Source: Phallusia mammillata (Eukaryota). From it: a stretch of 64,000 nt of DNA. Each line of letters starts with the position of its first letter. Within the stretch, counting starts at the first letter, position 1. The notes under the pieces are model-generated. The model made no database searches. It saw nothing but the letters and a program-made list of their open reading frames with translations, and was not told the origin of the DNA. The position numbers and the translations under genes were made by a program. Where the stretch lies: NCBI GenBank assembly GCA_965637545.1, contig OZ281496.1, positions 26,226,001 to 26,290,000 on the forward strand, in the 5' to 3' direction. This document shows positions 3,066-48,980 of this stretch, one piece after another.

Positions 3066-5510
3066 TCATTGTTCACAGATTGCCAATTTGTTACTACTAC
3101 ATGGGTGATCATCCATTGCAAAATCTTGAACATAGTAAAGATGGCCACAGTCCCCACTGTTGTTTGGCTCACCAGGATAAAAATCGGTGTTGGTGTTGGT
3201 CCTGGGAACTCCATCTATATATTTCCAGACTCCTTCCCGTTCAAGGTCATTCAAACCAATCCAGTAGTCCCCGGGGAGTCGCGTTTTGATCAAATAGGTA
3301 ACAATCCAGCTTAGTATGTAAAGAATATTATTAATAAAGCCACCCACTACAGAGGTCGTCAACCGTTTTTGCACTGTGTTATTAAACAGAAATTTTATCG
3401 CGGGCCGACATGAAAAGAAAACAAATGTTCAGCAATAAAGTTATGTTACTGGTCATATGAGCTTCTATGCGGTTGACAAAGCAACCGTATGTAAGGATTG
3501 CATTATATAAATCATTTTATCATCCCTGGGATGGACCGACTGCTACAAAAATGTTGCGAAGCATTTAACGTAAAAAAGTAGAAGGCCCGTTAACGAACTC
3601 CTCACAGACCTGCATCCGGTCACCCGGTGGTTGCCGACCACTGACCTATAAAGCATTTGCACGTTTGACAGCAATTTTCACGTATTTATGCCCTAACCTA
3701 AAATAATCCAGCTATGTAACCCCACTGTTACTTACGTGGTTCATCGCAAAGTAATTTTACGAAAAAGCACTTTTTGAGACAAATGTTACGTACTTGCGAA
3801 CAGTCGCATTTCTCATTCCCCAGGTCGCCAAATCTCCACCAATTGACTGACAGTATCTCCTCGCGTTTGCCCAATTTCTTTTAGTGGTCATAATCACATG
3901 GTCATGCTCTAGCACAAAGTTATTACTTAACACTAATACATATTTTATGCAAATACATAACACTTTGATAGATACCTTGCTCACAATGGTTTCCTGAATG
4001 CCAAATGTTGCAAGAGCAGTTGTAGCCAGTACTGGTGTCCGAGCAAGTTCCGTTATGCTGACAAAGGCCGACATTAGTCGAGCAAAAATTGGGCCCTAAA
4101 AGTATTATTTTTAGGAATGTTTAGGAAATACGCTTTTTTGTTTTCTCGTTAAGCTTACGGCATTGTCTTCCATCTCCTGTGTAGTTTGCGTTGCATGAAC
4201 ATTGGAAACTACCCACTGTGTTGATACAAGTTGCGTGTTCATGACAGTTGTGTGTTCCAGTTGAACATTCATCAATGTCTGAAAATAGTTTTTTACCATT
4301 GTCTTTAGGCCAAATAAAATAACGTAACCGATACGATAACATGATAGACTGTGTTTTCGAAAAGTGGCTGAAAAAAGCTTCAACCAATACAACATACATT
4401 ATATTCTGATGCCTACCTTTTCCACAACGAATTCCACTGTACCCTGATGCACACAAACACTTGTAATGGCGGGACTCGATGATGAATAATCCACCATTAA
4501 GACAGGTAGCTAAAGTAAAAGAACGTGATATTGTTTGACAAGTTCGTTATGGGAGGTCAGGGCGTCACACAAATAATATGTACTACTTTTATCCAAGTTC
4601 TCGCTATATAAACGAATACATTTAGTCACGTTTTGTCGTGCAAGGTCACTTTCAAATAAGCTAATGTAATGCAGGAATTCAATATGTAAATAATTTTGTA
4701 AATCCCTTGTGTGTTGCGTGGAAGTTATGTGGATGTCTTCAAGTGAAAACTATTGGCCTACGTCAGTGGTTTCCAACCTGTTTTGTCCTGTTCACTCTTT
4801 TAGTCGATATTCAAATTTAATTCCCCTCTACAAATAGCTGCATTCCTGCCTTAAATCAATGATATGAGAACTTTCTTTTTCTCAGCTCATATATGGCAAT
4901 TGCAGCAATAACACATAGCACAGAAAACCACTAAGAGATTAATATTGGGACACAAATTTCCCCCTACAAATTACAAAATTCCCCCCTGGTTGAGAACCAC
5001 TACGTTGCTCTTTAAGGTTATACAGCACCCATACGCTTAGTTGTTTCCCGTTGTTATTACTAAGTCTATCTTACATAGGGAACCAAGTGCTTCAAAAATG
5101 TGTACTTACTATTGTGTCTTTCCAGTTTAGTAAACGTTCCTACAGCCCCTAACTGGCTTTGAAGACTTGCTGTAGATCTAGAAACCTGTACACAAAGGTT
5201 GTTTAGTTGTTTATCTTTGTTACAAGTGGTTGACTTACCATAGCATAAACACCTATATATCCTACAATCGTTGTCAAAAATAGAGCACAAATAATTCCAA
5301 AAAAACACCGTTTTAAACCTTTTTCCTTTTTCTCAAAGTTGCCCACCAATTTCGCTTGTTGTTCTAGAAAATTATTTTACATTATTTCTTGAAAACCAAC
5401 TTCATTATAATACTTATACGTTGATCCGGAAGTGAAGGTTGACCAAGGTTGCAGCTCTCGTTTTCGGTGGTAATTGTTGTGTATTTAGTGTAAGCCATAT
5501 CACTTGACAT
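3066..5510 (-). CDS. L1: intact type II membrane protein, tail-TM-stalk-3 EGF-CTLD (327 aa)
   Basis: Exons 5510-5420, 5363-5239, 5185-5110, 4509-4417 (4-Cys EGF TCLNGG..CLC..RC), 4278-4159 (cbEGF DIDEC), 4095-3976 (EGF), 3908-3794 and 3309-3066 (CTLD with WIGLND, EPN, MDD and four core Cys). All introns GT-AG, total 984 nt, open frame. No signal peptide and one N-proximal hydrophobic helix. Confidence 0.92.
3350..3643. mobile_element. Old hAT-type MITE in the last intron of L1 (orthologous copies at 8483-8776 in L2 and 30236-30520 in L6)
   Basis: Ends CAG(A/G)GGTCG(T/G)CAACC ... GGTTGCCGACCACTG. TSD is degraded. Same intron position in three genes. Confidence 0.65.
4764..5002. mobile_element. 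hAT/Charlie-like MITE in L1 intron 3
   Basis: Terminal inverted repeats CAGTGGTTTCCAACC ... GGTTGAGAACCACTA. No clean 8-bp TSD found. Confidence 0.55.
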
Positions 5511-8500
5511 TGTTGTAGAACTACGGAGTTATCTCAAACGGTCCCAAAATAAAGTCCTGCACTATTAAACGAAATTGGTTACTCTACTGAATATTTCACT
5601 TCTGCCAACTTAATCTTTTAAAAAACTGACTTTATATCTCTGTCATAAGCGGTATGCAATGACGCTAAATGCAAACGACAGGTTAACCTTGCGCTTAATT
5701 TGTTAAAACTTCGAAAAAAGGTGAAGGGGCGGAATCACCACGATTTAGTGCAAGCAATTTTTATTATACAAGCCTCAACGAGAAACGCAATATAAAACAC
5801 CAATCTTCAATCTTCGCCTATTTATTGGCAGAGAAGGGAAATGCCCAACAAAATGCAGCAATTCAATCAATTCAAATGATTGGTATTTGTTTTTGAAATT
5901 TAAGTTCAAACGCCATATTTTCTCCTCTGAATATGTTTTCCCATGCGTTCTGGGTCAAGATCGTGTTTTCAAGCTTTAGCAATTGCCTTTTTAACACAAT
6001 TCTGACGAAGCCGTGTTATTAACGGTTTGAAACATTTTATGACTGTACAAACTTTTGAAATCCCCAACGACTGTGTTTAATTCAAACATATGTTTGTAAC
6101 GAAAAAGTTTAGAAAACATGAAATTTCATCGTTTTGAAAACAAATGACAAGATATGCATTTTATTGTTATTTACACTAAATAAGTGAATCTAAATTTGCT
6201 TTAGATTGTAACACGTTTGCAACTAAATTCACAATGGAAGGCTTACCCTTCCGGTCAAGATGTTAGACTTTTTTTTAGGAAAATTATTACACTTTTGCAG
6301 CGAACTTTCTCTCTCTCACTGGACAACGGATTACTAACACACCAACGGTGGATATTTAACGTGAAGTTGAAATAGCATTTGATTGAATCCTAAAGTTGCA
6401 GGTAAAATTTATATTGTACACCGGTGTGTAATAAATTACATCGAAAAACATGCTGAGAGAGACTTAAAATATTTTACTTCGTACACCGACTTGTAGGCTA
6501 ACCCTTAAAACGCCATAGAGCCTAACGTTTAAAGTGTTGAGGTTGTGCGGACCGCAATATCCATACTATTACTATTGGCCCTGTTCCAACGTTGCTCACA
6601 ATAATGTTTTACCATCTCTAAACATATCAGCAATACCCTTTTTAAAGACTTTAGTGACCAGCTTTAGCTTACGTAAAATTTAATTGGGAAACCACTGCTC
6701 TAAAAGCAACTGACACTCTTAACAAGTTCTCAGTAATTGTGGACGACATTACCATGCCAACCTTTTAGCCGGACAGGTCCTGTGAAAAGCATTTATATTA
6801 ACATTCACTTATAGGATGCCTATATGCATGAACAATGGTTTGCGATGGTAATTACAAACTGCAAATCTGTCTTGTAGTTGCTCAATTGGTCATAGTTGGC
6901 TCACTAGGATGAAGATCAATATTGGTTGTTGTCAAGAAAACACTATCATGATATATCCGTTTACGCCATTTTGATACGTGAATAAATTTGGCCGCTGCTG
7001 TTTTGGGTATTCAACGTTATGTGCTAGAAGCCCAACATGTTTTTGTTTTTTTCCTGAAAAATTGGCGTGTTCTGAGAATCGATTATATAATTGCGAACAG
7101 CTAGGTATCTCGTTCATTATGTCGCGAAATCTCTATTAAATGACATAATTTCTCGCGCCTGTCCAATTACTTGGTTCTCTGTATTGGCTCAGTTGGCCCA
7201 AATAGCCGCTTCCTATATCGTTTGGCGCGTCACGATAAAATCAGTACTGGTTGTTAACAATGTTCTGCGTCAAGGACGCGAGCCGAGCCAATTCGCGACA
7301 ATCCAATGCAGCTTAAGTTGCGTAATTGGGACATTGAGTGTATATTCTAAAAATATATTGAATGTAAATTTTGTTTATTTTTAACCACGCAGTTGTTTTG
7401 ACAAACTGGTAAAAACCATTTTGCGTGGACGAATAATTTGATTTTTTGTTCTTATCAACCGTGCGAATTTTAGGTACAATTAATGTTTTTTTTTCAACTA
7501 ATACGAAAAACTTATGATATTTCTTTTTCAAAATTAGACTGGGGTTTCTTGAAAACTGTGCTGACCCTTTCCTTTTTAAATGTTAACAAACTTTATTAAG
7601 TTTTTTTTATTCACTATATATTTGCAATGTATTTGGGAAACTGCTCGAACAAAAGCGGCGAATGACAAATACAATTCCATATGCGTTTGTTTACAGACGT
7701 TTACAACCAACCGAATAATTTGCGACAGAGCACGAAAACTCCAATTATTATGTTTGCAGAAAACGATTTGGTAACATACATTATATTTCAATGTTTGCAT
7801 ATTGGTCGTGCTGCGACTATATTTAATCCAACTTTACGCAACAATCTTTCAAAACAAAGTTATAGCAGATTGTTTAAAAGAATCAAGAAATTTTAACATT
7901 GCGCTAAAGGCGACGCCAGTAACTTAAATGTTTACAGTTTCATTTACAAAATATTGCCTCATAATATTGTGACCAGGGATGAACACACTTGAAACTGAAG
8001 TAATTTTATGTTCAAAGTCCACAAACAAATTGAAAAGGTGATTTTGGGTGATTGGTCCGTTTGCACTTGAAATGGTTAACATATAAAAAAATAATTAAGA
8101 AACATGTTAACTAACATGGAAAGTATAAATGTGACTGCCATGAGATTTTAAACGCGTTACCAAGGCAAAAATCGCTCACTAAGGCAATCATTGCTCACAG
8201 ATTGCCAATTTGTTACTACTACATGGGTGATCATCCATTGCAAATTCTTGAACATAGCAAAGATGGCCACAGTCCCCACTGTTGTTTGGCTCACCAGGAT
8301 AAAAATCGGTGTTGATGTTGGTCCTGGGAACTCCATCTATACATATATGTATATCCAATCTCCTTCCCGTTCAATAAGGTCATTCAAACCAATCCAGTAG
8401 TCCCCGGGGAGTCGCGTTTGGATCAAACAGGTAACAATCCAGCTAAGCATGTAAAGAATATTATTAATAAGACCACCCACTACAGAGGTCGTCAACCGTT

Positions 8501-9235
8501 TTTGCACTGTGTTATTAAACAGAAATTTTATCGCGGGCCGACATGAAAAGAAAACAAATGTTCAGCAATAAAGATATGTTACTGGTCATATGAGCTTCTA
8601 TGCGGTTGACAAAGCAACCGTATGTAAGGATTGCATTATATAAATCATTTTATCATGCCTGGAATGGACCGACTGCTACAAAAATGTTGCGAAGCATTTA
8701 ACGTAAAAAAGTAGAAGGCCCGTTAACGAACTCCTCACAGACCTGCATCCGGTCACCCGGTGGTTGCCGACCACTGACCTATAAAGCATTTGCACGTTTG
8801 ACAGCAATTTTCACGTATTTATGCCCTAACCTAAAATAATCCAGCTATGTAACCCCACTGTTACTTACGTGGTTTATCGCAAAGTAATTTTACGAAAAAG
8901 CACTTTTTGAGACAAATGTTACATACTTGCGAACAGTCACATTTCTTATTCCCCAGGTCGCCAAATCTCCACCAATTGACTTACAGTATCTCCTCGCGTT
9001 TGCCCAATTTCTTTTCGTGGTCATAATCACATGGTCATGCTCTAGCACAAAGTTATTTTATTAACACTAATTCATATTTTGTGCAAATACATAACACTTT
9101 GATAGATACCTTGCTCACAATGGTTTCCTGAATACCAAATGTTACAAGAGCAATTGTAGGCAGTACTGGTGTCCAAGCAAGTTCCGTTATTCTTGCAAAG
9201 GCCGACATTAGCCGAGCAAAAGTTGGGCCCTAAAA
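5117..9235. repeat. Segmental tandem duplication A, copy 2
   Basis: Near-identical to 1-~4100. Confidence 0.95.
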
Positions 9236-10810
9236 GTATGATTTTGAAGAAACGTGCAAGAAATTATGATACTTTGCTTCCTAATAAAGCTTACGGCATT
9301 GTCTTCCATCTCCTGTGTAGTTTGTGTTGCGTGTTGGTGACAGTTGTGTGTTCCACTCGTACATTCATCAAAATCTAAAAGGTATATTCAGAGTTAAATA
9401 AGGCACGTTTAGTTTCACACGGTGTAGTTTTGAGTTATGACCTAAAATGCATGGGCTATAGGGTTGACATGAAACAAAATAATGATTTCATTATTTAAAA
9501 TTTTCAAATGATATTTTACCCAATTTCAAACTAACAAATAACATTGCAAGACAGAAATCGCATAATGTTGTAAATATGTTGGCATATTTAAGGCCTTTTG
9601 TAAACGATTCGTGACTTTAACGTTGCTATGAGATGATCGATTTACTTCATGTGTGTCGGTTCCAGTGCAACATAAAACTTTGAAATTATTGGGAAGAAAC
9701 GCGATAAACGCGCTGCTCATCGCCCTAGCTAATAATGTGTGGCATTTCCCAGCTGCTATGTTTCACTTAATAGCTGGCAAAAATCATCTTTTACAGTATA
9801 TGGCTGTTTTTATGCACGCAAAACGTATCAAAGACAGTGTAAATTACAAAGGATCTCACGTGGTCTCCCCGATCCTCAGGAAGTTGGCCGTTGGTCGTAA
9901 CTTACCACATTGTCTTCCATTCGTTCACAAAATGCAACAACTGACTTTATCTGGTGCTATGTCTCATTGTTAACTCGCTTACCACACTGTGTTCCATTTC
10001 CTGTGTAGTTTGCGTTGCAGAAACATTGAAATCCGCCCACTGTGTTGATACAAGTTGCATGTCTATAGCAGTTGTGTGTTTTACTCAGGCATTCATCGAT
10101 ATCTGAAAATAGTTTTGCAATTAACTCATTAAGTTTTTGCATATTTTTGCTTTGGATAAGCACAAATGTGGAAATATCAATATTCATGCAAATAATGTCA
10201 ATAAAGAAACGTTTTACCGTTTTCGCAATGTTGCCCACCAAATCCCGAAGCACATACACACTTGTAATGGTTTAACTCAACAACAAAACTTCCGTTATTA
10301 AGGCAGGTACCTGAATGCAAAACAACAAATACATTATTTATACTGTACTTACTGCTTTGGCGTGAATGTTGTCAAATGGCGTATTATTCGAACTATTATA
10401 TTATTATTCTGTAGATAGTAGATCTAAAATCGTCTTTTTTACCTTTAAGTTGTTTTGAAGGCTTTGAAACCTGAAAATACATATTTCGGTTATTTGATGA
10501 ACACGCACCGTATGAAATGTTTTACTCACTATCACAAAAACTCCAATGAATCCACAAGTCGTTGCTGTAAAAAGGCCAAAAGTAATTCCCAGAAAGAGAC
10601 GTTTAGAAACTGAAACGTTTTTTACAAAATTGTTTGCCAATTGTGTTTCTTGTTTTGTGGGAATTGGAGTAGTTTTGCAATCTACAAAAAAAGCATATTA
10701 AATAAAGCACAGAGAAATAAACTGTCAACCTCAATGACCTGGACATGACTTCGATTACCTTCAAACATACATGTCTGATATCTTGGCTGTACATCTTCAT
10801 CGGACGCCAT
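8188..10810 (-). pseudogene. L2: disabled type II EGF/CTLD receptor gene
   Basis: Exons 10810-10759 (MASDEDVQPRYQTCMFE), 10681-10530 (TM), 10470-10443 (9-aa stalk), 10310-10218 (4-Cys EGF), 10102-9983 (cbEGF), 9374-9295 (cbEGF with a 40-nt deletion), 9229-9110 (EGF), 9041-8927 and 8442-8188 (CTLD). An 8-nt insertion in the last exon creates TAG at 8339-8337 before the EPN motif. Start codon assignment is tentative. Confidence 0.85.
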
Positions 10811-12661: not shown

Positions 12662-15448
12662 TTAAAAGAGCCTCTGACATATTGCCAACTCGCGCGCATT
12701 ACAGTTTGTATCATCCATCCGGAATCTGAAGAAGTGTTGCAAGTGGCCACAGTCGCCATCATTGTCGTTGTTGTTTGGTTCACCAGGATAGAAATCGGTG
12801 TTGGCATCTGTCGCTGGAACACCATCAATGTATTTCCAAACTCCTTCCGTTTCAATGTCGTTCATACCGATCCAATAGTGTTGCCGGGGACGCGTTTGAC
12901 GCAAATATGCTACAATCCGCCTAAAGGTGCAAACTTTAGGTGAATTTTACCTGCTATTTACGTTTTATTTTTTACTATTGCATCGAAATAATCAATTTTT
13001 GTCAGGATATTATTACTCAGAACTATTCTAGTTGGGGTAAAACATACAACAGTCAACGTTCCTTTTTTATGTGCTTGCAACAAGCTTGCGTTACGTACTT
13101 GCGAACAGTTGCGTTTCTCATTCCCCAGGTCGCCAAATCTCCGCCAATTGACTGGCAATATTTTCTTGCGTTTTTCCACGTTCTCTTTTGTGTCATAATC
13201 ACGTAATCGAGCGCTAAAACAAATAGATTACATAATCACCCCAAAATTATCTGGATTGTTTAAATTCTCGAAAAGACTAAAGTCATTATACTTAATGCTC
13301 AATCCTATTTTTGTGCAAATACATAACATTTTAAACTATACCTTGCTCACAATGGTTTCCTGAAAACAAACTTTTGCAAGAGCAATTGTAGGCAATATTG
13401 GTGTCCAAGCAAGTTCCGTTATTCTTGCAAAGACCGACGTTAGCCGAGCAAAAGTTGGGCCCTAAAGATATGGTGTTAAGGAATGGCCAAGAAGTTATGG
13501 TATTTTGCTTCCTAAGTAAGCTTACGGCATTGTCTTCCATCTCCTGTGTAGTTTACGTTGCATGAACATTGGAAACTATCCACTGTGTTGATACAAGTTG
13601 CGTGTTCATGACAGTTATGTCTTCCACGTACACAGTGGTCGTCTTCACATCAAATAGCAAAAATGCGTTGCATTACTAACAGTAAATACTTTTCACACAA
13701 TAAATGTACCTGTTTCACAATGCTGGTCAATGTAGCCTTCGCGACAAGAACAGTTATAACTGATATCTGTATCTATGCATGTTCCGTTATTTTGGCATAT
13801 TCCGACATTTTGCGCACAGAAGTCAGCAACTGGTGTACATAAAAAACAACAACACAATAAAACAGTGGTGTTTTATCGATATTTGCTAAAAATGCAAGTT
13901 ACCACAACGCGTTCCTTCTCCGGTGTAATTTACGTTGCATGAACACTGAAAACTAGCCACTATGTTGATACAAGTTGCGTGTTGATGGCAGTTGTGTGTT
14001 CCACTCGTACATTCGTCGATGTCTGCACATAAAACGGCAAAAATGTGTTGCATTAGTAACAACAAATGCTTTTGACACAATAAATATATACCTGTTTCGC
14101 AATACCGGCCAGTGTAGCCATCAAGGCAAGAACAGTTGAAACTAAGATCCGTGTTTAAACACGTTCCGTTGTTTTGACATAATCCGACATTTTGCGCACA
14201 GAAGTCAGCAACTGGTGTACATGAAAAACAACACAATGAAGCAATAGTGTCTTGTCAATATTTACTAAAAATGCAAGTTACCACAACGGGTTCCATCTCC
14301 GGTGTAATTTACGTTACATGAACACTGAAAACTACCCACTGTGTTGATACAAGTTGCGTGTTGATGGCAGTTGTGTGTTCCAGTTGAGCATTCAATAATG
14401 TCTAAGAATAATTTTTCGCGATTTTGTTAGGCCCAATAAAACAACGTACGCGGTTTTATAACAGTATTGCCTCTGTTGTTGGAAAAGTCAGTAAATAATG
14501 TGCCAACCGATACAACATTCGTTCTTAAGCCTACCTTTTTCGCAGCGAATTCCACTGAACCCTGAAGCACACAGACACTTGTAATGACGTGATTCGATGA
14601 TGAATATTCCACCATTAAGACAGGTAGCTAAAGTAAATAAGTATGTTGCTTGATGAATTCATTATAGAAAGCCAAGACTCACACAATTAAGTAAATATAT
14701 ACCTCTACGACTTATATCTAAATTTTTTTTCAATAATTATTAACCAAAAAATTCTTATTGACAAGTGTAAACATTAAAAAAGGTCACTGCAAAATGAGCT
14801 ACTGTTATGCATATAATCAATAATTAAACAGTGTGGCAAATACCTTGTTGAGTGGTAGGTAAGCTTACATGTACTTATTTCAGTTTTAGTACCTTTTGCC
14901 TACACTATTGTAAGCTTGAGTAGCACCCCTACGTTTTTTCGTGACCCACTTTCGACCGTTTTAATAATTAACCAACTCACCAGCTGAAAAAGTTTCGTTA
15001 TGTAGGGAATCCCCCGCAGACAATACAACACCATTGGGTATTTCCAGTTTAGTAAACGTTCCGACATTCCCTGACTGGCTTTGGTGTTTCGAAACCTGTA
15101 GATCTGGGTTGTTAAGTTGTTTTCGTTTTTTTACAAATGGTTGACTTACCATGCCAAAAACACCTATAAATCCTATAATCGTTGTCAAAAATAGAGCAGA
15201 AATAATTCCAAGAAACAACCGTTTTAAACCATTTATATTTTTGTCAAAGTTGCCCACCAATTTCGCTTGTTGTATGGGGTTGCTATGCATTGTTTCGCAT
15301 TCTAAAAAAATTGAATTGCATTACCTGTGAAGACCAAACTCATTAAAATACTTATACGTTGATCCCACGGTAAAGGTTGAACAAGGTTGCAACTCTCGTC
15401 CTCGTCTTCCATTTGTACCAACTTACTGAGAGCAATTTTTGTTTCCAT
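12662..15448 (-). CDS. L3: intact type II receptor with 7 EGF modules and a CTLD (496 or 513 aa)
   Basis: Exons 15448-15358 ([30 protein letters not shown]), 15301-15150 (TM), 15095-14981 (or -15032; stalk), 14627-14535, 14401-14282, 14211-14092, 14022-13903, 13829-13710, 13642-13526, 13461-13342 (EGFs, all phase 1-1), 13213-13099 and 12920-12662 ([18 protein letters not shown]). Open frame throughout. Confidence 0.9.
13526..14401 (-). repeat. Intragenic tandem repeat (~380 bp unit: cbEGF exon + EGF exon + introns) in L3
   Basis: cbEGF exons end at 14282, 13903 and 13526; the EGF exons beginning ADFCAQNVG start at 14211 and 13829; the introns are also repeated. Confidence 0.9.
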
Positions 15449-16389: not shown

Positions 16390-17652
16390 AATTGTTTACA
16401 GGGAAACAATCGCATGCAAATTGCAAAACTGTTCATTTTACATGGGATGGTCATCCATTGCAATCCATACCTAGGTGCATGGCAGTCGACATTCCCGTTT
16501 GGTTCACTAACATTAACATGGTCACTGGAACACAACAATTGTTTTTCTGATTTCCTTTCTGATCAAGGGCATCCAAATCAATCCAGTAAAATTTCGTGGG
16601 TCGTGCTTGTAACAGATTCGCAGTTTATTATTATTATAGTTTCCCGCGCTCTTGGGCGCATTGGGCAGCAAGATTGTCTTTTGCAATTTCCTCCATCTCC
16701 TTCATGTTTAACCCTCTCATTTCCAGGTCTTTGCGGAAAGTCTTCCCCAGGTAAGCTTTGGCCTACCTCTTTTTCTTTTCCCTTGCGGTCTCCAGCTCAT
16801 AGCAATTGTTGGAGCCCGTTCGTCTGACATGCGTAACACATGCCCCGCAAGTCTAAATCTCCGCGCCGACATGATGGTACATAAAGACTTGGTACCACTA
16901 ATTCGGTACACCTCATCATTTGTAATGTGGTCCTTGTATGTGCTATTTAGGATCCTTCGAAGACAACGCTGATGGAAAGCGTTTATGTGCTTTTTCAGCT
17001 TGACTGTCATTTTCCAGGTTTCACTGGCATATAGAACGGTGGGCATTACAATTGACTGGTACAGTTTGATCTTTACCAATTTCGAAACTTTCGAGCTTGA
17101 CCAAACCGTTTGAGCCTTCTGAAGGCCGAAGTAGCTTTTCCGATGCGGGCATTTATGTCGGCCTCCACATCAACATCTGTTGTGAACACAATGCCAAGAT
17201 AGGTAAAGCTTGTGGTGTTGTTAATAGGCTCAATTCCATTGATGGTTAAATTTACGTTGGACTGAGTTTCCCCTCCAACTCGAAGTAACTTAGTCTTGTC
17301 GCTGTTGATCGTCAGACCGGATTCGCAGTAGTCAACGTAAAATTTCTAAAAAAGGAATCAAAAATACGAAACGTATTTGAAATCCACGATGCTTATGAGG
17401 AAGCCTAAATGTTTTTTATTATTTTCTGTTAGTTTGAATTGTGTTTCAAGCTGGTTCATATGTTTGTACTCGAGTGGGCCCAGTCCAACGATAATGTTAG
17501 CTCGAAGCATCAAACGAGGTTTATCGTTATAAAACAGTATTATACTTGCGAACAGTTGCATTTCTCATTCCCCAGGTGGTCATATCTCGATTTAAGTGAC
17601 AATATTTTTAGGCATTTGTCCAAGCTTGGCTTGCAATCGTAATTATGTGGTC
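16390..17652 (-). pseudogene. CTLD pseudogene fragment split by a LINE
   Basis: 17652-17546 reads [29 protein letters not shown] (first CTLD exon with a stop). 16615-16390 reads QARPTKFYWIDLDALDQKG..EPNGNVDC..AICMRLF with frameshifts (second CTLD exon). Confidence 0.75.
16624..17335 (-). mobile_element. 5'-truncated RTE-clade non-LTR retrotransposon (C-terminal RT region)
   Basis: Minus strand gives SGLTINSDKT..FTYLG..DINARIGKATSAF, then a frameshift, then LYQSIVMPTVLYASETW..FHQRCLRRIL..GHVLRM..GKRKRGRPKLTW. These are typical RTE-type ORF C-terminal motifs. 3' tail (TAA)n at 16625-16638. Confidence 0.85.
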
Positions 17653-17699
17653 TAGCTATACAAAGTGTTGCAAATCCACCGCTCACAGGTTGCAAATAT

Positions 17700-18105
17700 C
17701 CACTTTACGGTTGCAATATTCCATTGCCAATGTATGTCCGCTGATGGCTTACTTGGTCACCAAGATAAAGATCAATATGAGTATTAGTATTGTCATAGAA
17801 ACACTATATTTCCTGTTTACGCTATTTAAGCCGGAGGGCTAGTTTGGAACTAATTGATGGCAATCTAGCTCCATATGTACATTTGAGCCAGGAACGCGAT
17901 ATGTAAATGAAATTGGCCACTGTTGTTTCGGGGTTTCAACGTCACGTGCGGGAACCCGAATTGTTTGTGATCTTTTCTAAAAATTCGAATTCCTTGAAAA
18001 CCGATTGCTTGCGAACAACTTTGTCGCTTATTCATCATGTCAACAAATCTCCGTCAATTGACATGCAATAATTCCTCGCGTCTTTCCAATTACTTGCTGT
18101 ACTTG
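17700..18105 (-). pseudogene. Second decayed CTLD exon pair
   Basis: Minus strand NWKDARNYCMSIDGDLLT** at ~18100-18008 and HIDLYLGDQ (cf. NTDFYPGEP) at ~17780-17755. The intervening intron relic is homologous to 1850-1965. Confidence 0.6.
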
Positions 18106-22715: not shown

Positions 22716-22995
22716 TTGAGTAATGTTCTCCTGAGTAAAAAATATTGCAAGAGCCATTCGATCCAATAAGTGTGTCTAAGCAAGTCCCGTTATTCTCGCA
22801 AAAGTTGGCCTCTGGAATTTTTTTATATTGTGCAGTTGTGTCCAGGAACACAGAACAAAGAAGGAGGTAGCCATGACGCAGTGTACATTTGTTGTTTTAC
22901 ACTTACCGCACTAATTTCCATCTGTGTAGTTTGGGTTGCAGGAACATTGGAAACCACCAGCAGTCGTTTTGTGCAGTTATTAAAATAAGAGCATG
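22715..22995 (-). pseudogene. Decayed EGF and cbEGF exons of a lost family member (second copy ~36285-36560)
   Basis: Minus strand [31 protein letters not shown] (Cys lost) and TAGGFQCSCNPNYTDGN*C|GTAAGT. Confidence 0.7.
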
Positions 22996-27037: not shown

Positions 27038-27052
27038 TGAATGACGAATGCA

Positions 27053-27781: not shown

Positions 27782-27834
27782 TGAATGACGAATGCAAGCA
27801 ACAAGCGAAAGGCGCAAGAACAGCGTGATTGATT

Positions 27835-38091: not shown

Positions 38092-39752
38092 TTAAGTAGT
38101 TCGCTCGCAGATGGCCAACTTGCGCCGTCCACATGGGTGGTCATCCATTTTGAATCCGGTACCATACAAGTAAGCGCAGTCGGAACCAGCCACGTCGTTT
38201 GGCTCACCAGGAAAAAAATCGGTATTGGCTCTTGTCATTGGAACACCGTCAATGTATTTCCAAACTCCTTCTTCTTCAAGGTCATCTAATCCAACCCAGT
38301 AATCCGCTATTGGGCGCGTTTGGAGCAAATTTTCGATAATCCAACTTTAGATTTAAAAGCAAACAAATAAAGTACAGTAAATGCAACGGGTTGTTTTATC
38401 GCACAAAAAGTGGAATTCTTGGACCTGCAAAGGGCCGCTATGGAATTCCATTTAAAAAGCGTTTAATTCTTTCTTCGTCTTTCGTTGATGTTACACAATG
38501 TTTTATGTGTCTAATAAACTCGGTACCTGCGAACAGTTGCATTTCTCATTCCCCACGTCGCCAAATCTCCACCAATTGACTGACAATATTTCCTTGCGTT
38601 TGCCCAATTTCTTTCAGTGGTCATAATCACGTGTTCAAGCTCTAATACAGAGGTGTTTGTAAAACCAAATCATATTTTGTGCAGTTTCATAACGCCACCA
38701 ATAATACCTTTCTCACAATGGCTTTCTGAGTACCATACTTTGCAAGAGCAATTGTAGGCAGTACTGGTGTCCAAGCAAGTTCCGTTATGCTGGCAAAGGC
38801 CGACATTAGTTGAGCAAAAGTTGGGTCCTTAAAGTATAAATATTAGAGACATCCAGACATTTGTAATATTCTGTTTTCTAGTCAAGCTTACGACACCGCT
38901 TGCCATCTCCTTTATAGTTTGCGTTGCATGAACACTGGTAGCTACCCACTGTATTTGTGCAGGTTGCGTGTTGATTGCAGTCATGGGTTTGAGTTGAGCA
39001 CTCATCAATATCTAAACATATTTATTGGTTGGTAAGACTGACAGGCCCATAATCCGCGAACAATTTCAACTGAGGTTTTTACAATTTACCTTTTTCGCAT
39101 CGAATTCCACTGAACCCTGAATCACACAAACACTTGTAATGTAGGGATTGAATGACGAAAAATCCACCATTAAGACAGGTGTCTGAATGAAAGACAAATG
39201 GTTGCAAAAGCGTCTCAACATTAAATCTCTTCTCTAAGTTTAAGCTAACGTTAAAGGTTATGTTCGAAATGTTTTTCGATTAAAAATTAATTTACCACTT
39301 TTATTAGGCACCTATAAGAACTATTAATAGTCAACGGTTACCGTTGTGTCTTTCAAGCTTAGTGAATTGCCGCACCTCTCCCAACTCGTTTTGAATGTTT
39401 AAAGCCTAAAAATCATGTCTTTGAATGTTTTGTTGAAACTTTTTAGAAGAAAAAATACTTACCATAAAATGAACTCCTACAAATTCAAAAACGATTGTCA
39501 AAAAAAGAGCAAAAGCAATTCCCAAAAACAGTCTTTTAGAAGTTGTAACGTTTCCGGTCAAGATTTCGGACAATTTTGACTTTTTTGCCTGGTCTTGCAT
39601 TGTTTTGCAATCTAAAAAACTCTACGTTATCTCATGATTTATCCAATTATCCCAATTTATGCAAAATACTTACGTTGATCAGGAGTTGACAGCTCACCAA
39701 TCTTGCAGTTTTCTTCTTGAACGTCCATGGTTATGTATTTATTTGAAGACAT
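38092..39752 (-). CDS. L7: intact type II EGF3-CTLD receptor (330 aa)
   Basis: Exons 39752-39674 (MSSNKYITM..), 39611-39463 (TM with internal Glu), 39405-39342, 39182-39090, 39011-38892, 38827-38708, 38641-38527 and 38344-38092 (EPNDVAGSDC..MDD). 993 nt, open frame. Confidence 0.92.
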
Positions 39753-41325: not shown

Positions 41326-44198
41326 ATGTCCTATAATCGGGGAAGAAGAAATACGAAAAACGCCTACATTGTTCCCGACCGAAAAAACACCACCAAAACC
41401 CTTTCAGGTAACCTTAGCTTGATTTTTTGTAAGCTTTTAAAATCTTTTTTGTGTTTCATGCAGGTCATCGCTTGGGTGGCTTTAAACCGACTCAGCCACG
41501 GTCACTGCAACACGTTGTTAAAGATGTGGACGATTTGCGTGGTGTAGTAGTAGGAATTTCAAGTGTAATGCTTATCACATTCATTTGCGGATTTGCAACA
41601 ACTTATATTTTGGTATGTAGCCTTGGAAAGAGTATCGACGCAATGTATACTAGCGCAATTTTTCCATGTTTATTTATTATCAGGAGTGGGTTTAGTTTAC
41701 CGTAAACATCCCGCGCTCTCAAACATTTTTCATGATGTCAAAATCCAGTTGCACATTCATAAGATTTTTTCTTTGCATTGGAATCTTACATTGTGGTTTA
41801 GATATGTTCTTGAAGCCTAAACACTGAAAATTCCAGTTCAAATTTTTACCAGGGTTTAAAAGAGCGAGTTGTTTTGTAGGTGCCGCGTTTTGTTAGAATA
41901 CTTAGGTTTGGTAATGTTATGCTCAAAAGTTGTTTTGTAGCGAAGGGTTATTGTTGGCTGCATATATATAAGTTATAACCTACCTAAAGTGTGGTTACAT
42001 ACTACTTTCAGATTTTGGGATACGAACCGCCACAAGAAAAATACAACGGTATTACAAATATAGTTTATTCGTAGTAGGCTACTGTGCTCTTAACAAAATC
42101 CCTTTTTTACAGGTACATGTCTCAACAATGGATCATTTAATTTTAGTGTTGAATCACTTGATTTCAATTGCATTTGTACTCCGGAATTTACAGGACACGA
42201 TTGTGGAATTGGTGAGTTTAGGAGCAAAACCCTTTAAAATTTGTTTTTGGTGCATGTGCGCATCTGGATCGCTGGATTTCAGCTAAAATTTTCAAAAAGT
42301 ACTAACACGTTTATATGTTTACACACACCACCTCTTACCTAAAAGGGTAAAACTGTTAAAATACGCAAGAAACCGATTAAAAATAAATAGTATGAGGTTT
42401 TTATCCAAAGCGTTTTTTAATGGCGTGGTCTTTCAAATCATTTGAAAATAATTCAAAAGCCTTTTTTTATCTGTGTTATTTGTGACATTTAGACATAGAT
42501 GAATGTTTGATTGGGACTCATAACTGCAGCCACCAGGAGGATTGCACAAACTTATATGGAGGTCACCTGTGTACTTGTAACTCAAACCACACTCAAAATG
42601 GCACCCAGTGCAGTAAGTCATATCAAAAGATCTGACAAAGTTACGAATTGGATCTTTTTGTCCAACGTGCATAAGACTAAAAAGTACTGACTATATTTAC
42701 TTCGTTGGTAGTTTCTGATTCGATATTGCAATGCGCGACCTGGGCAATGTTATAGCCAAAGAAACAATTAAACGGTGGGAAGTTTTGTAATGTGTATAGG
42801 CTTTACTTTTAAAATAGTTACAGCCGAGTATAGTGCGCCTAAAATAGCATTAAAAGTACAAGTCGCCTAAAAATTGTATCAATTTGCAGCACCTAACTAC
42901 TGTTCTTCTAATCCGGGACTTTGCATACATGGGACATGTGTGGATACAACTACAGATTATGATTGTTTATGTGAACGTTGGTGGGAAGGCAAAAACTGTG
43001 ACAGTAAGCTGCTACGCTACATAAAACAAATGCTGTCCAAAATTTATTTTTATATTTTTTATAGGCAATTATAATTTGAACTTAAATTAAATTTGTAGCC
43101 TCTCAAGCTTGCTAAACGAAAACAAGAAATGTTCACAGCGCGTAGAAACGTTTTGCATCCAACTTTATTCTGTAAACCTAAAACTTATGTGTTTTATGTT
43201 TATCCTTTGCAAATAAATTTTACTTCACAATAACTCGCTCATTTTGTTTTCCCTATAAATCACGACAAAGTATAGAATCAGCTAAAGCAGTGGTTGCCAA
43301 AATATATGCTTGACAATTCTAAACATTCTTATTCCTTCCCAATAGACTATATAGTGGATGCTTAACCATACAAAGATCATTGAATTAAAGTTAATTTCTC
43401 CCTTCAAGTTTTAAAATTGTATTATATATGTTGTAGTTCCAAGTCGTCATGCATTGTCAAACAGATGGCGCAACTGGACGAGTGCAAGGGCACTTTGTCA
43501 AAAGCTCGGCGCAGACTTAGCGCACTGGGGAATGCAAGATCCAATAGTTAGAAGGTAAAATATTAAAGATTCAAACGATGTGTATTTATTTACCAAGCAT
43601 TACTGGTTGCCGGCTATAACTATACTGGCAACTGTATTTGAACTAGCAACAAAACAATTTACTGAATATGCTTGTGAACACAAGTGTTAACCTTTTAGGC
43701 TTAACTCTCTTCGACAACAATACAACACCATTAAAGAAACATTGATTACTGTAAAATAATAATTTATAGTTGCTTTAGTAAGTGGGTCCTGAGTTGGGAC
43801 CCAAATCCGAATATGTAGGCATAAAACCAGGGCAGAACCCACTAAAAAATGTGATTCAAACCCACCAGCCCTGTACCTCCTCTACTCAAATATAGGATTT
43901 TAGCTAAAAATATTATGAATTGTTTTTTACCAGACGATTAGTCGATTTCTTGCTTCGTCCCCAAGGCGGTGCATTTTGGATCGGTTTAACGGACCTAGAT
44001 GTGGAAGGTGAATGGAAGTACATTGATGGTGTAGCAATAACAGACAGCAATTCCAATTTTAATCCCAACGAACCAAACAACCTTGGAGGCTCAAATGACG
44101 CGAATTGTGCCGTGATAAAAGAATATTATGGCTTTCGAATGGACGATATTGACTGCGGTGCACTCCGAAACTCAATTTGCGAGAAAAGTCGAATATGA
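41326..44198 (+). CDS. L8: plus-strand type II EGF3-CTLD receptor (325 aa if the short stalk exon is used)
   Basis: Exons 41326-41407, 41464-41612 (TM GVVVGISSVMLITFICGFATTYIL), 41880-41910 (short stalk; the homologous long form 41853-41910 has TAG), 42113-42211 (4-Cys EGF), 42493-42612 (cbEGF), 42890-43003, 43437-43554 and 43934-44198 (FWIGLTD..EPN..MDD). AATAAA at 44232. Confidence 0.75.
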
Positions 44199-45518: not shown

Positions 45519-48500
45519 ATGTCCCATAATCGGGGAAGAAGAAATACCGAAAACGCCTACATTGTTTCGGACCAAAAAAATACCGCCCAGACCTATTCAG
45601 GTGACCTTAGTTTGCTTTTTTTGAAAGCTTTTAAAGTCTTCTTTGTGTTTCATGCAGTTCAGCGCTTGGGTAGCTTTAAACCGACTCAGCCATGGTCACT
45701 GCAACACGCTGTTAAAGATGTTGACGATTTGCGTGGTGTGGTATTAGGAATCTCTAGTGTAATGCTTATCACATTCATTTGCGGATTTGCAACAATTTAT
45801 GTTTTGGTATGTAGTCTGTGTTTGGAAAGAGTGTATGGAAGCAATGTATACAAGAACCGTTAAAGTTTAAGTACCGTAAACTGCCCGCGCTCTCAGTAAA
45901 AACCTTTTTGAATACATCCCGCATTTTCGCAAATTAAAAAAAGATTAAACTGTTTCGTTTTCTTTTATTCATAATGTAAAATCAAGTTTCACCTTACCCC
46001 TTACATTGTTGTTTAAATATGTTCTTAAAGCCTTGACATTGAAAATCCAGGGTTTCAAACAGTGAGTTCTTTTGTACTTACCACGTGTTGTTAGAATACA
46101 AAAGTTTGGTAATATTATGCTTATTAGTTGTTGTTGTTTTTTGTATCGAAGAGCATTGTTGGCTGATTTATAAATAATTTGAATACATATATATATATAT
46201 ATAAATAAATAAATATATCCTACTTAAACTGTGATTACATTTTTAGATTTTGGGACACGAACCGCCACAAGAAAAATACAACGGTATAACTAATATATTT
46301 TATTTGTAATAGGCTACTGTGCTCTCAATAAAATCCCACTTTTGCAGGCACATGTCTCAACAATGGATCATACAATTTTAGTGTTCAATCTCTTGATTTC
46401 AATTGTATTTGTACTCCGGAATTTACAGGACAGGATTGTGGAATTGGTGAGTTTAGGATTGTGAAACTTTTGGGTTTGTTTATTGATGCATGTGCGCATC
46501 TGGATCGGTCGCTTTAGATGAAAATCGCAAAAAGCGCTAAAACGTATGTCTACACACACCACTTCTAAAACTATTTGGTGAAACTGTTAAAATACACGTA
46601 ACAGACTGATTTAAAACAAATAGTATCAGGTTTTTATCCAAACGTTTTTTAATGGTGTGCTGTTTCAAATCGTTTTAAATTAGTTCAAAACTATTTTTTT
46701 CCATCTGTGCTATTTCTAACATTTAGACATAGATGAATGTTCGATTGGGACTCATAACTGCAGCCACCGGGAGGATTGCACAAATTTATATGGAGGTCAC
46801 CTGTGTACTTGTAACTCAAACCACACTCGAAGTGGCACCCAGTGCAGTAAGTCGTATCAAAAGATGTGGCAAGGTTACGAATTGGATCCTTTTTTTTCCC
46901 AATTACTACAAAGGCTCAAAATGTTGTCGACTTTGTTTACTTTGTTGGTAGTTTCTGATTCGATATTGCAATGCCCGACCTGTGCAGTGTTAAGGGCAGA
47001 GAAACAATTAAACGGTGGGCAGTTTTGTAATGTATACAAGCTTTACTTTTGACATAGTTACAAACAAGTACAGTGCGCCTAAAATGGCGTAAAAAGTATA
47101 AGTCGCCTAAACCAGTGGTCGGCAACCGCCGGTCCGCGAGGAGTTAGTTACCGGGCCGTATGCTATTTCCGGTTAAATGCTTTTTAACATTTTGCCCATG
47201 TGTCTCGGGGAATATAAACTAACTTAGTCGTTTTCATTGGTAAATATTTGTAGTTTTTTGAAGGCCGGTCCTCGATAAAATTTCGGTTTCAAAAACGGTC
47301 CTTGGTACAAAAAAGGTTGCCGACCCCTGGCCTAAACAACCTACGCTTTTGCAGGAACTAACTACTGTTCGGCTAATCCGGGGCTTTGCATACATGGAGC
47401 ATGTGTGGATACAACTACAGATTATGACTGTATATGTGATAGCTGGTGGGAAGGCAAAAACTGTGACAGTAAGCTGCTACGCTATATAAAATAATGCTGC
47501 CTAAAATTTGTTTTGCCCGAAATATTTCGGCAAGCACGTATAATTTGGACTTGAACTTAATTTGGAGCCCCCTGCTCTGATCGAGCTTGCAAAAGGAAAA
47601 CAAGAAATGTACATATCGCACAAACACGTTTTGCATCCGTCGCAACTTTATTCTGTAAACCTATAGCTTATATGTTTTGCGTTTATCCACAGCAAATGTA
47701 TTTTACTTCACAGCAACTCGCTCATTTGGTTTTCTCCATTAATCAAGACAAAGTAGAATCAGATAAAACAGTAGTTCCTAACATTTTTCGACGAATTCCA
47801 CATTTGACAATTCAAAACATGCTTATTCCTTCCCAATGGACTGCATAGTGGATGCTTAACCATACAAAGATCATTTAATTAAAGTTAATTCCTACCCTCG
47901 AGTTTCAAAATTTCTTTCCGGTTGGCAAGCACACAATTAACACACCAACACGACATATCAGGTGACAATAAAAAAGATTATTTTATTATATATATTGTAG
48001 CCCCAAGTCGTCATGCCTTGTTAAACAAATTGCGTAATTGGACGCATGCAAGGATACATTGTCAAGATCTCGGCGCAGACTTAGCGCACTGGGGGATGCG
48101 AGATCCAATAATTCGAAGGTAAATGTTACATGGCACAAGAATGAATATTTATTTTCCAAGCATTACTGGTTGCTCGTTGTTGCTACTGGCAACTGTGTTC
48201 GAACCAGCAACAAAACAATTTGCTAAATATGTGAACACACGTGTTAATTCAAAGGATGAATCTGTTCGACAACAATACAAGAAAACCATTGAAGAAACAT
48301 TGATTATAGTAAAAAAATATTTTATAGTTGGTTCAGTGAGTGGGTCCTTAGTTGGGACACAAACCCGAACATCCAGGCCTAAAACCAGGGCAGAACACAT
48401 TTTTTTTAAATCGTTCCAAAGTTAGGTTTCGTATGTGGAAACTCAGACATGAAAATACAAAGTTAAGTTTCAGGCTACAGTTAAGTTTATTTATAAGCTT

Positions 48501-48980
48501 ATTCAAAACTAAGCCCAAACTTGGCCCGAAAAGCCCGGTCCGACTGCTCTTGTTTGTTAGGCTGAATATCATATGTGATAAAAAGTTGATTTAAACCCAC
48601 TGCTCTTTTTTGTTAGGCTAAATATGATAAAAAGTTGATTCAAACCCAGCGTGTACCTCCCTTACATTAGGATTTTTAGCTAAAAATATTATGAATTGTT
48701 TTTTACCAGACAAATAGTCGATTTCTTGCTTCGTCCTCTTGGCGGTGCATTTTGGATCGGTTTAACGGACCTTGATGTGGAAGGTGAATGGAAATACATT
48801 GATGGTGTAGCAATAACAGAGAGCAATTCTAATTTCAAAACCAACCAACCAAACAACGTTGGAGGCGAATTGTTAAAGGACGCCAATTGTGCTGTCATAA
48901 AAGAATACGATGACTTCCAAATGGACGATATTAACTGTGATTTAATCCGAAACTCTATTTGCGAGAAAAGTCGAATTTGA
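45519..48980 (+). pseudogene. L9: paralog of L8, all exons open except the putative stalk exon (in-frame TGA); pseudogene or rescued by unidentified splicing
   Basis: Exons 45519-45600, 45658-45806, 46051-46108 (TGA at 46063-46065), 46348-46446, 46727-46846, 47355-47468, 48001-48118 and 48710-48980 (QPN..MDD). AATAAA at 49011. Confidence 0.65.
47113..47329. mobile_element. hAT MITE in an L9 intron, 217 bp
   Basis: TIR CAGTGGTCGGCAACC / GGTTGCCGACCCCTG; TSD GCCTAAAC at 47105-47112 and 47330-47337. Absent from the L8 paralog. Confidence 0.9.

Follow-up and report, generated by a model that had tools for sequence, protein, structure and literature searches.

Why should the last exon of tandemly repeated lectin-type receptor genes appear hypervariable when the exons preceding it look nearly alike? 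The question is raised by a 64-kb window (the whole stretch of DNA analysed here) of the Phallusia mammillata genome, for which an initial annotation had proposed that diversifying selection on specificity shapes the ligand-binding loops of the CTLD. This window is an ordinary birth-and-death tandem lectin array of an ascidian, with seven intact lectin-type receptor genes (L1, L3, L4, L6, L7, L8 and L9), two broken ones (L2 and L5) and several relics. We propose, with a probability of roughly two in three, that the last exon owes its hypervariable appearance mainly to the mosaic make-up of the genes, whose parts differ in age.

Layout of the array and its broken copies

Using tblastn searches, translations and splice contexts, we found the genes to share one layout: the cytoplasmic tail comes first, followed by a signal-anchor, a short stalk and three EGF domains, and the protein ends in a CTLD spread over two exons, CT1 and CT2. 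The features of the window are:

1..382, minus strand: L0, 5' exons (cytoplasmic, TM and stalk), the remaining body lying past the left edge of the window
3066..5498, minus strand: L1, intact; cytoplasmic exon ~5418-5498, TM exon ~5215-5361, stalk ~5111-5218, EGF1 4418-4510, EGF2 4154-4279, EGF3 3977-4093, CT1 3794-3908, CT2 3066-3309 (tblastn and splice contexts)
8188..10649, minus strand: L2, pseudogene; CT2 8188-8442, partial EGF2 9290-9375
12662..15427, minus strand: L3, intact; CT1 13092-13211, CT2 12662-12920
16416..18103, minus strand: decayed CTLD pseudogene with stop codons in its CT1-like and CT2-like pieces
18505..20631, minus strand: L4, intact; CT1 18993-19112, CT2 18505-18772
22723..22964, minus strand: EGF2/EGF3 relics with a stop codon; counterparts at 36297-36540
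24082..24556, minus strand: L5, orphan last exon; exon 24124-24358 plus ~200 nt of intron, 93% identical to L7
24545..26522, unstranded: left arm of an inverted duplication, 99% identical to the reversed 27837-30017 (1959 matches, 16 mismatches)
26509..27796, unstranded: region of the assembly gap (gap proper 27053-27252), non-coding, between L5 and L6
29955..32267, minus strand: L6, intact mosaic; CT1 30658-30783, CT2 29955-30198
38092..39752, minus strand: L7, intact; CT1 38523-38645, CT2 38092-38344
41514..44198, plus strand: L8, intact; TM exon 41514-41645, EGF1 42115-42210, EGF2 42492-42617, EGF3 42892-43005, CT1 43439-43555, CT2 43934-44198 (tblastn and translations)
45711..48980, plus strand: L9, intact; CT1 48003-48119, CT2 48710-48980

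L8 is arranged head to head with L7, is covered by contigs from three studies and shares ~80% identity with L9 along the entire gene. L3 has seven EGF exons, its EGF2-EGF3 pair being triplicated (13343-14628). Both the Met-initial hydrophilic exon and the hydrophobic exon were located in L0, L1, L3, L4, L6 and L7, the anchor exon alone in L2, L8 and L9, and neither in the orphan L5. The last exons of all seven intact copies possess an AG acceptor, an open frame and a stop codon. Pfam matches on L1 comprise Lectin_C and EGF_CA; in an Rfam scan of the entire window zero families reached the gathering score. The tail, the uncleaved signal-anchor and the single C-terminal CRD correspond to the layout of group II type II receptors, from which we infer that the array encodes type II membrane proteins; Ca2+-dependent sugar binding, and any recognition role, are likewise predicted.

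The two broken genes, which the initial annotation passed over, have distinct histories. The 3' part of L2 is a 97% copy of L1 (5117-9333 against 1-4197), with insertions of 3 nt and 8 nt that result in a frameshift in its CT2. L5 has suffered a 12-nt deletion that takes out the last Cys, and the inverted duplication cuts the piece at 24556; the adjoining 24539-24604 is a mirror copy of the final 22 codons of the L6 CT2. As the last Cys is lost and the frame continues into non-coding sequence, we rejected the possibility that L6 uses L5 as an alternative last exon. Both sets of EGF2/EGF3 relics lie inside a segmental duplication (18989-24556 / 30654-38541). The 544 bases flanking the gap on either side are identical and in the same direction (26509-27052 = 27253-27796), and the gap looks like two overlapping contig ends left unmerged; it overlaps no last exon or other exon under study.

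Fold, metal site and relatives of the receptors

Taken alone, the last exons score 38-48 bits against Pfam PF00059 (cut-off 22.6), and CT1 scores 15 bits, under that cut-off, as expected for 37 residues. The four conserved cysteines are present, one in CT1 and three in CT2 (C54, C70 and C78), and form putative disulfides. W16 and G18 of the WIGL motif are invariant, with L7 reading WVGL, and the EPN tripeptide is found in L1-L8, L9 having QPN. Each of the nine copies, and every close relative, has M-D-D in place of the WND motif, whose Asn and Asp are ligands of Ca2+ site 2: Trp gives way to Met and Asn to Asp, and the original Asp is retained. The Glu two residues before Cys2 (E193 of MBP-A, E293 of langerin) is also missing, the position being occupied by G, A or S (A in L8/L9). 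Directly before Cys2 there is Asp in L1-L7 and Asn in L8/L9, the consensus of a wider CTLD alignment being E-D-C. A coiled-coil neck and orthology to CLEC4 are not borne out, the stalk being made of three EGF exons and identity to CLEC4 CRDs being 24-28%.

A protein word-index search with the last exon of L1 returned a single unrelated fragment of 103 aa, its length window shutting out full-length relatives; these were instead gathered by one large HMMER search. None of the Phallusia mammillata protein records compared is encoded in the window, and their CT2 identity to the array is at most 60%. One of them, P0071 (CAB3231610.1, 337 aa, 'CLEC4F-like'), shows the same succession of tail, anchor (hydrophobic stretch of 23 residues, 59-81, mean hydropathy 2.5), stalk with VG-FTKLE, three EGF domains and CTLD, shares the MDD motif and has exon joins exactly as predicted for the array genes. 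Its EGF and CT1 exons are 77-97% identical to L1-L7 and 40-54% to L8/L9, and P0071 and the array genes belong to one gene family. The name 'CLEC4F-like' is an automatic label. P0070 differs in having an N-terminal Cys-rich module, which looks LCCL-like, in place of the anchor and QPD in place of EPN. The double-loop alpha/beta fold is supported by an AF2 model (pLDDT 94) of residues 214-337 of P0071, a relative and not a window copy, for which the top Foldseek match is DC-SIGN (TM 0.86, rmsd 1.8 A).

Where the last exon varies

The seven last-exon peptides quoted in the initial annotation all lie where it had placed them (L1 3170, L3 12781, L4 18633, L6 30059 and L7 38205 on the minus strand; L8 44070 and L9 48846 on the plus strand), and the interval it described fits the last exons exactly, 3066 being the stop of L1 and 48980 that of L9. 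Its contrast between an almost invariant first CTLD exon and a variable segment from EPN onward (the tail) is real within the L1-L7 clade, where 27 of the 38 columns of CT1 are invariant as against 13 of 42 from EPN onward (Fisher p=0.0007). It disappears against L8/L9, to which CT1 of the clade is only 44% identical. At this deep split identity is 40% in the tail and 42-51% in the EGF exons, and the differences between these regions and CT1 are not significant (Mann-Whitney p 0.56-0.79). Nor is the variation limited to the tail: it is the first 14 codons of CT2, corresponding to the alpha2 helix and the next loop, that vary most, 3 of the 14 columns being invariant and identity inside the clade standing at 47%. 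Among the window copies and relatives, the EPN-Cys2 loop is 4 to 11 residues long.

Mosaic structure and probable age of the parts

The observation that L4 and L7 are nearly identical in their EGF exons and far apart in the last exon proved accurate: the three EGF exons differ by 1, 1 and 2 residues, the last exon extensively. This contrast exists because of a recombination boundary. L4 and L7 are 85-97% identical up to CT1, introns included, while the last intron beyond is unalignable; their similarity stops in CT1 at ~19059-19029, which places the breakpoint at CT1 or the last intron (maximum chi-square p<=0.001). Self-BLAST blocks terminate at 18989/30654/38524. In sliding windows the 5' part of L4 is 97-100% identical to that of L6 through mid EGF3, again with the introns, and identity is 100% across several hundred bases. 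L6 is itself L4-like from its 5' end to ~30884, inside EGF3, and L1-like downstream (179/183 informative sites, then 262/345; maximum chi-square p<=0.001). P0071 is a mosaic too, its EGF and CT1 exons being 89-97% identical to one or another window copy and its CT2 at most 60%. The 5' exons have been homogenised together with their introns by recombination or gene conversion, whereas the last intron, last exon and 3' flank are old. The front halves are alike because recombination made them so and they are young, not because the tail is being driven.

Substitution rates and site models

Between types, pS rises in parallel with pN, the EGF and CT1 exons showing values of 0.19-0.45, the CT2 core 0.49 and the tail 0.73-0.78. 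That pS in the CT2 core stays below that of the tail, despite the unalignable adjacent intron, could point to micro-conversion or constraint at the nucleotide level. Under M0 the tail has an omega of 0.24, as against 0.18-0.30 in the other partitions, and a tree length of 7.7, as against 3.3-4.3; its synonymous sites are saturated, so that its omega is poorly measured and could hide episodic selection. Among the young pairs, tail omega is 0.37 for L8-L9, 0.17 for L5-L7 and 0.78 for L1-L6; over the whole last exon L1-L6 reaches ~0.95, which could be relaxation or adaptation. The recently homogenised exons are under strong purifying selection, as exemplified by EGF2 of L4 and L7 with 6 synonymous versus 1 non-synonymous differences. 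Diversifying selection is probably not the cause of the variation concentrating in the tail.

The site models were run in our own GY94/F3x4 implementation, which was checked only against a small null simulation. M1a places 53% of the codons at omega 0.07 and 47% at 1, and CT2 has 24 invariant columns. The M1a/M2a, M7/M8 and M8a/M8 comparisons all favour a class of ~3-7% of the codons with omega 3-7 (p=0.029, 0.019 and 0.0055, respectively, with 7 genes). The p-value was 0.017-0.018 with two other trees, 0.029 with gapped columns dropped and 0.015 with 11 sequences, spanning 0.015-0.075 across choices of taxa and tree; the tail-only partition gave p=0.051, and 1 of 24 null simulations matched the observed statistic. 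The omega>1 signal is thus nominally significant and borderline. The M7/M8 comparison is among the checks that the initial annotation had put forward for diversifying selection. The signal is carried by a single codon, the one whose posterior for omega>1 exceeds 0.95. This codon, alignment column 79, stands at the third Cys plus two residues:

3093-3095, minus strand: column 79 of L1, S
12695-12697, minus strand: column 79 of L3, A
18550-18552, minus strand: column 79 of L4, Y
29982-29984, minus strand: column 79 of L6, H
38125-38127, minus strand: column 79 of L7, R
44160-44162, plus strand: column 79 of L8, A
48942-48944, plus strand: column 79 of L9, L

Column 79 aligns with K313 of langerin, a residue of the extended sugar site that affects specificity (PMC7618208, PMC3873535), and the runner-up columns 68 and 76 are also in the tail. 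There is a borderline case for repeated adaptive replacement at one codon on the rim of the sugar site, perhaps at up to three.

Origin of the pattern and alternative explanations

In the mosaic reading that we favour, unequal crossing-over and gene conversion would recently have made both exons and introns uniform across the 5' two thirds of the genes, with exchange breakpoints in EGF2, in EGF3 and at the border of CT1 and the last intron. This would have left old, unhomogenised lineages of the last intron, last exon and 3' flank, namely L1/L2/L6, L3, L4, L5/L7 and L8/L9. Within CT2, purifying selection would fix the residues of the fold and the metal site (WIGL, EG-WKYIDG, EPN, the residue before Cys2, MDD and the cysteines), while about half of the other positions would drift at omega near 1, with in-frame indels tolerated, in the alpha2 helix, the post-EPN loop, the beta3-beta4 hairpin and the beta4-beta5 loop. 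The adaptive replacement at the sugar-site rim may form a thin layer added to this drift.

That the binding half of the CTLD has escaped homogenisation could stem from selection for diversity or from conversion failing once the sequences had diverged. We consider it doubtful that the last intron and last exon are a protected 'specificity cassette'. Exchange would in that case homogenise the receptor body family-wide, including copies outside the window, and selection would keep old, differing heads, recombined onto the body through the last-intron breakpoints and bearing a rearranged metal site, in which the Asn position of WND has taken over the carboxylate of the Glu before Cys2, giving MDD. 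If this is true, a tunicate would possess a repertoire of glycan receptors that is diversified and encoded in the germline. It is unlikely that the differences in sequence and length from EPN to the end are driven by pervasive diversifying selection on glycan specificity, with each paralogue pushed to a different ligand. Such selection would account for the omega>1 class with its three foremost columns in the tail, for the match of column 79 to a specificity-changing residue of human langerin, for the range of EPN-Cys2 loop lengths and for metal-site residues fixed amid variable ones. However, the whole tail shows no excess of omega, pS climbs alongside pN, the deep split shows no faster change in the tail than in CT1 or the EGF exons, young pairs remain below 1 and a borderline likelihood-ratio test yields a single codon; moreover, variation is even greater in the alpha2 helix, which lies far from the sugar site, and a recombination breakpoint accounts for the L4/L7 contrast. 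What survives of the proposed selection on specificity is a small part, the borderline signal at that one codon.

It is quite improbable that constraint is simply relaxed, most copies being redundant with tails decaying towards gene death. L2, L5, one decayed copy and the EGF relics are indeed already dead, omega is close to 1 between the last exons of L1 and L6, the L8 CT2 has a net gain of 23 nt in another study's individual, and the window copies' own sequence is absent from every listed RNA-like public run, an absence that is not evidence of silence. Against this, seven copies keep open frames, AG acceptors, four Cys and the invariant CT2 columns, half of the codons are strongly constrained, and the homogenised exons are under strong purifying selection. 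The identical gap flanks, the adjoining 99% inverted duplication and the stretch of complete identity between L4 and L6 might indicate an assembly artefact, with haplotypes or collapsed repeats joined so as to create spurious paralogues and mosaics. We regard this as very improbable: nucleotide differences among the last exons amount to 20-60%, far more than the ~1-2% between individuals (a figure suggested by the 0.60-0.61 share of 31-letter words in runs X4 and X5), contigs from three studies tile L8-L9 free of conflict, and the independent protein record P0071 repeats the mosaic pattern. Three of four public runs are identical to the window, the fourth having only two coding SNPs, both in EGF2 of L9; the contigs did not include one for CT2 of L9.

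Comparison with known lectin receptor systems

The array is a worked case of a tandem immune-type family in which recombination gives the appearance of 'hypervariable binding loops', and it leaves knowledge of CTLD evolution unchanged. It adds an unstudied tunicate family of predicted type II lectin receptors with an EGF stalk and an unusual MDD variant of the metal site, in which the codon equivalent to langerin 313 is the first candidate for differences in specificity. Like the predicted array proteins, the vertebrate langerin/CLEC4K, DC-SIGN/CD209, CLEC4F and mincle are N-in single-pass proteins with one C-terminal CRD and EPN, and the vertebrate group II CRDs share with the array an extended site made up of beta3 and the residues that follow Cys3; the best PDB sequence match is langerin (E 3.6e-9). 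They differ in having a coiled-coil neck where the array has a stalk of three EGF domains, WND where it has MDD, and the Glu two residues before Cys2 that the array lacks, at an identity of 24-28%.

Among tunicates, the ascidian BsCD94-1 and CiCD94-1 are type II membrane proteins with one CTLD, found on blood cells, and CiCD94-1 is reportedly without carbohydrate-binding capability (PMC5465252). By description they resemble the predicted array proteins in being tunicate type II proteins with one CTLD, but they are single genes and an EGF stalk is unmentioned. TC14 of Polyandrocarpa (PDB 1byf) is a tunicate CRD whose fold matches the P0071 model (TM 0.85, 26% identical), but it is soluble and has neither EGF domains nor a membrane anchor. 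With respect to their evolution, the NK-cell Ly49/KLR receptors and the snake-venom snaclecs are of a similar kind: they too form tandem arrays whose genes are duplicated, lost and subject to exchange, and their CTLDs vary in the loop region, as seen here. In those systems, however, omega>1 is documented across many contact residues, whereas in the array it is borderline and concerns one codon.

Organization of the lectin receptor array

Searches with the L1 exon peptides as queries (tblastn) resolved a tandem array of C-type lectin receptor genes in the window, with the intact and broken copies numbered in window order:

1-382: further copy, 5' exons only, at the left edge
Minus strand: L1, L2, L3, L4, L5, L6, L7 (tblastn)
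16416-18103: decayed copy
22723-22964 and 36297-36540: EGF relics
Plus strand: L8, L9 (L7 and L8 lie head to head)

The intact genes have a hydrophilic exon with a Met at its start (none was found for L8 and L9), one strongly hydrophobic exon, three EGF exons, of which the middle one is of the calcium-binding type, and a CTLD split over a first exon of about 38 codons (CT1) and a last exon of 80-89 codons (CT2). A short stalk exon with VG-FTKLE is present in the L1-L7 copies. Introns are in phase 1 where they flank EGF exons and in phase 2 within the CTLD, an AG acceptor is present at every last exon, and CT2 matches Pfam Lectin_C with 38-48 bits. The CT2 of L2 is broken by insertions of 3 nt and 8 nt, while in L5 an orphan last exon is left, lacking the final Cys and cut off at 24556. 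L3 departs from the common plan in having seven EGF exons (13343-14628) with a tandemly triplicated cbEGF-EGF pair, the repeat matching at 84% between 13535-14014 and 13912-14393. The short tails encoded by the cytoplasmic exons (5418-5498 in L1, 20539-20631 in L4, 32175-32267 in L6 and 39660-39752 in L7) keep a Tyr as Y-x-x-hydrophobic, namely K-Y-T-T-I in L1 and K-Y-I-T-M in L4, L6 and L7, as in endocytic sorting signals.

The non-coding DNA between L5 and L6 contains an N gap (27053-27252), which touches no exon compared here. The gap has an identical 544-base sequence in direct orientation on either side (26509-27052 and 27253-27796), with the identity beginning exactly at the gap edge; on the simplest reading, it is probably a case of two overlapping contig ends left unmerged. 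In the same region, 24545-26522 is an inverted copy of 27837-30017 at 99% identity, with arms of about 2 kb, 16 mismatches and one indel of about 200 nt. This duplication truncates L5, places a mirror copy of the final 22 L6 CT2 codons at 24539-24604, and has in both arms copies of a 714-bp element that is also found downstream of L3 (11655-12368). Within the L9 introns, 47100-47330 and 47800-48000 show a summed contig depth 100-1000x that of neighbouring DNA in 4/4 runs, with many loose ends, and are high-copy interspersed repeats. No contig from four DNA runs covers 48800-48999 in L9 CT2, with both flanks covered, a kind of hole that proves nothing. At 44103, in the post-EPN loop of L8 CT2, a contig of another individual (run X4) differs by a net +23 nt, which, if real, would shift the frame and point to a possible L8 null allele. 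No Rfam family reaches its gathering score anywhere in the window.

Relatives and predicted fold

A search of 1.84 billion representative proteins with a profile built from the last exons of the seven intact genes gave single-domain matches that include P0068 and the P. mammillata proteins P0070 (CAB3231614.1) and P0071 (CAB3231610.1, 'CLEC4F-like'). In P0071 (337 aa), architecture and exon joins agree with those predicted from the window DNA, and residues 59-81 make up a hydrophobic anchor. P0071 is encoded outside the window, its CT2 being <=60% identical to any copy therein. A single other public run yielded contigs with four additional relatives. With P0071:214-337 standing in for the window copies, the AlphaFold model (pLDDT 94) has DC-SIGN as its top structural match (TM 0.86), and other sugar-binding CRDs, namely collectin CL-K1, dectin-2, langerin and the tunicate lectin TC14, were also retrieved; langerin is the best solved sequence relative of L1 CT2. 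P0070, also outside the window, has the same cbEGF-EGF-CTLD cassette, 50-59% identical to the window copies in local matches, behind a different Cys-rich N-terminal module of LCCL-like appearance, and bears the motif QPD. This suggests module shuffling reaching beyond the array.

Distribution of the variation

The variation among the paralogs is real, yet the initial annotation described it incompletely. Every peptide that it quoted was present in a six-frame scan of the window, and its bounds are exact, 3066 being the stop of L1 and 48980 that of L9. It had set a nearly invariant CT1 against a tail variable from EPN onward. Within the L1-L7 clade this holds, with 27 of 38 columns invariant in CT1, 21/32 in the CT2 core (YWIG to PG) and 13/42 in the tail (CT1 versus tail, Fisher p=0.0007). 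However, the most variable segment, with 3 of its 14 columns invariant, lies in the same exon but ahead of EPN: these first 14 CT2 codons correspond, in the model, to the end of helix alpha2 plus the loop that follows, away from the sugar face. Nor does the conservation of CT1 extend to L8/L9, against which identity is only 0.44 in CT1, 0.42-0.51 in the EGF exons, 0.57 in the core, 0.40 in the tail and 0.22 in alpha2; in this comparison neither CT1 nor the EGF exons differed significantly from the tail (Mann-Whitney p 0.56-0.79).

About 30 nt encoding EG-WKYIDGV in the CT2 core (18675-18705 in L4) are near-identical in L3, L4, L5 and L7, with L8/L9 being similar. Elsewhere these copies are saturated at synonymous sites, and the intron, 45 nt upstream, is unalignable. 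This could be micro-conversion or nucleotide-level constraint.

Recombination, constraint and selection

Self-BLAST revealed that L4, L6 and L7 share long blocks of 91-93% identity ending at 18989, 30654 and 38524, which is the CT1 end. In sliding windows, L4 and L6 share 97-100% identity between EGF1 and mid EGF3, introns included, past which L6 becomes L1-like (95-99% up to CT1, 80-92% across the last intron and CT2); the breakpoint falls at ~30884, up to which 179/183 informative sites agree with L4 and past which 262/345 agree with L1 (maximum chi-square, permutation p<=0.001). Similarly, L4 and L7 are 85-97% identical up to CT1, beyond which the last intron is unalignable, with a breakpoint at ~19059-19029 (same test, p<=0.001). 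Two segmental duplications, 1-4197/5117-9333 and 18989-24556/30654-38541, have ends inside genes; the second spans the interval between the last introns of neighbouring genes. P0071 shows the same mosaic pattern, its EGF and CT1 exons closely matching window copies (EGF1 97% to L3, EGF2 90% to L1, EGF3 95% to L6, CT1 89% to L1) and its CT2 not. The juxtaposition of near-identical EGF exons and different tails in L4 and L7, which is indeed observed, thus marks a recombination boundary rather than the selection contrast that had been read into it.

The substitution rates show a gradient along the gene. Between the old tail lineages of the L1-L7 clade, pS is 0.21 in EGF1, 0.19 in EGF3, 0.33 in CT1, 0.45 in EGF2, 0.49 in the CT2 core and a saturated 0.73-0.78 in the tail; synonymous differences thus climb from 5' to 3', and non-synonymous differences climb in parallel from 0.05-0.09 to 0.30. 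Under a codon model, omega is 0.18 for EGF1+2, 0.30 for EGF3+CT1, 0.29 for alpha2 and core, and 0.24 for the tail, which is distinguished by tree length only (7.7 versus 3.3-4.3 in the other partitions). In young pairs, where dS is measurable, tail omega is 0.37 for L8-L9, 0.17 for L5-L7 and 0.78 for L1-L6.

Site models, run on the seven intact last exons with our own GY94/F3x4 implementation, gave an M0 omega of 0.30 and, under M1a, 53% of codons at omega 0.07 and 47% at omega 1. The M7/M8 comparison that had been proposed as a check prefers a class with omega>1 (p=0.019; M8a/M8 p=0.0055), as does M2a, which places 4% of codons at omega 5.5 (2dlnL 7.06, p=0.029). Two alternative trees gave p 0.017-0.018, dropping gapped columns 0.029, and adding four relatives 0.015 (2dlnL 8.44); the signal was weaker with five taxa (p 0.075) and with the tail partition alone (p=0.051), and no partition other than the tail has such a class. 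The observed statistic was reached in 1/24 data sets simulated under the M1a null. In all runs one codon carries the signal: column 79, two residues past the third Cys (S in L1, A in L3, Y in L4, H in L6, R in L7, A in L8 and L in L9), while columns 68 and 76 have posteriors near 0.5. Column 79 aligns with K313 of langerin, which together with K299 makes up the extended sugar site of that receptor (PMC7618208), and the human K313I variant alters glycan specificity (PMC3873535). The signal is sensibly placed but small, and comes from saturated branches and several tests with uncorrected p-values. The diversifying selection on specificity that the initial annotation had inferred is supported, at a borderline level, for only one codon, perhaps up to three. 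The dominant cause of the variable tail is probably mosaic age together with relaxed constraint in an array evolving by birth and death.

The metal site and comparison with known receptors

These proteins would be cell-surface receptors that present a single CRD on a three-EGF stalk. The differences between paralogs include positions that follow EPN, MDD and Cys3 or lie on beta3, whose equivalents tune specificity in DC-SIGN. Their langerin equivalents do so too, going by our alignment and published work (PMC7618208). Judging from these positions, the glycan preferences of the heads may well differ, but most of the difference between paralogs is not shown by the sequence data to have been driven by selection. 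The four Cys and the Asp at the WND position are fixed, as is EPN apart from QPN in L9. Whereas canonical CRDs have W-N-D and a Glu two residues before Cys2, all copies and relatives have M-D-D (e.g. 3111-3119 in L1) and this Glu is absent family-wide; immediately before Cys2 there is an Asp in L1-L7 (3147-3149 in L1) and an Asn in L8/L9. This looks like the relocation of a carboxylate within the putative Ca2+ site 2.
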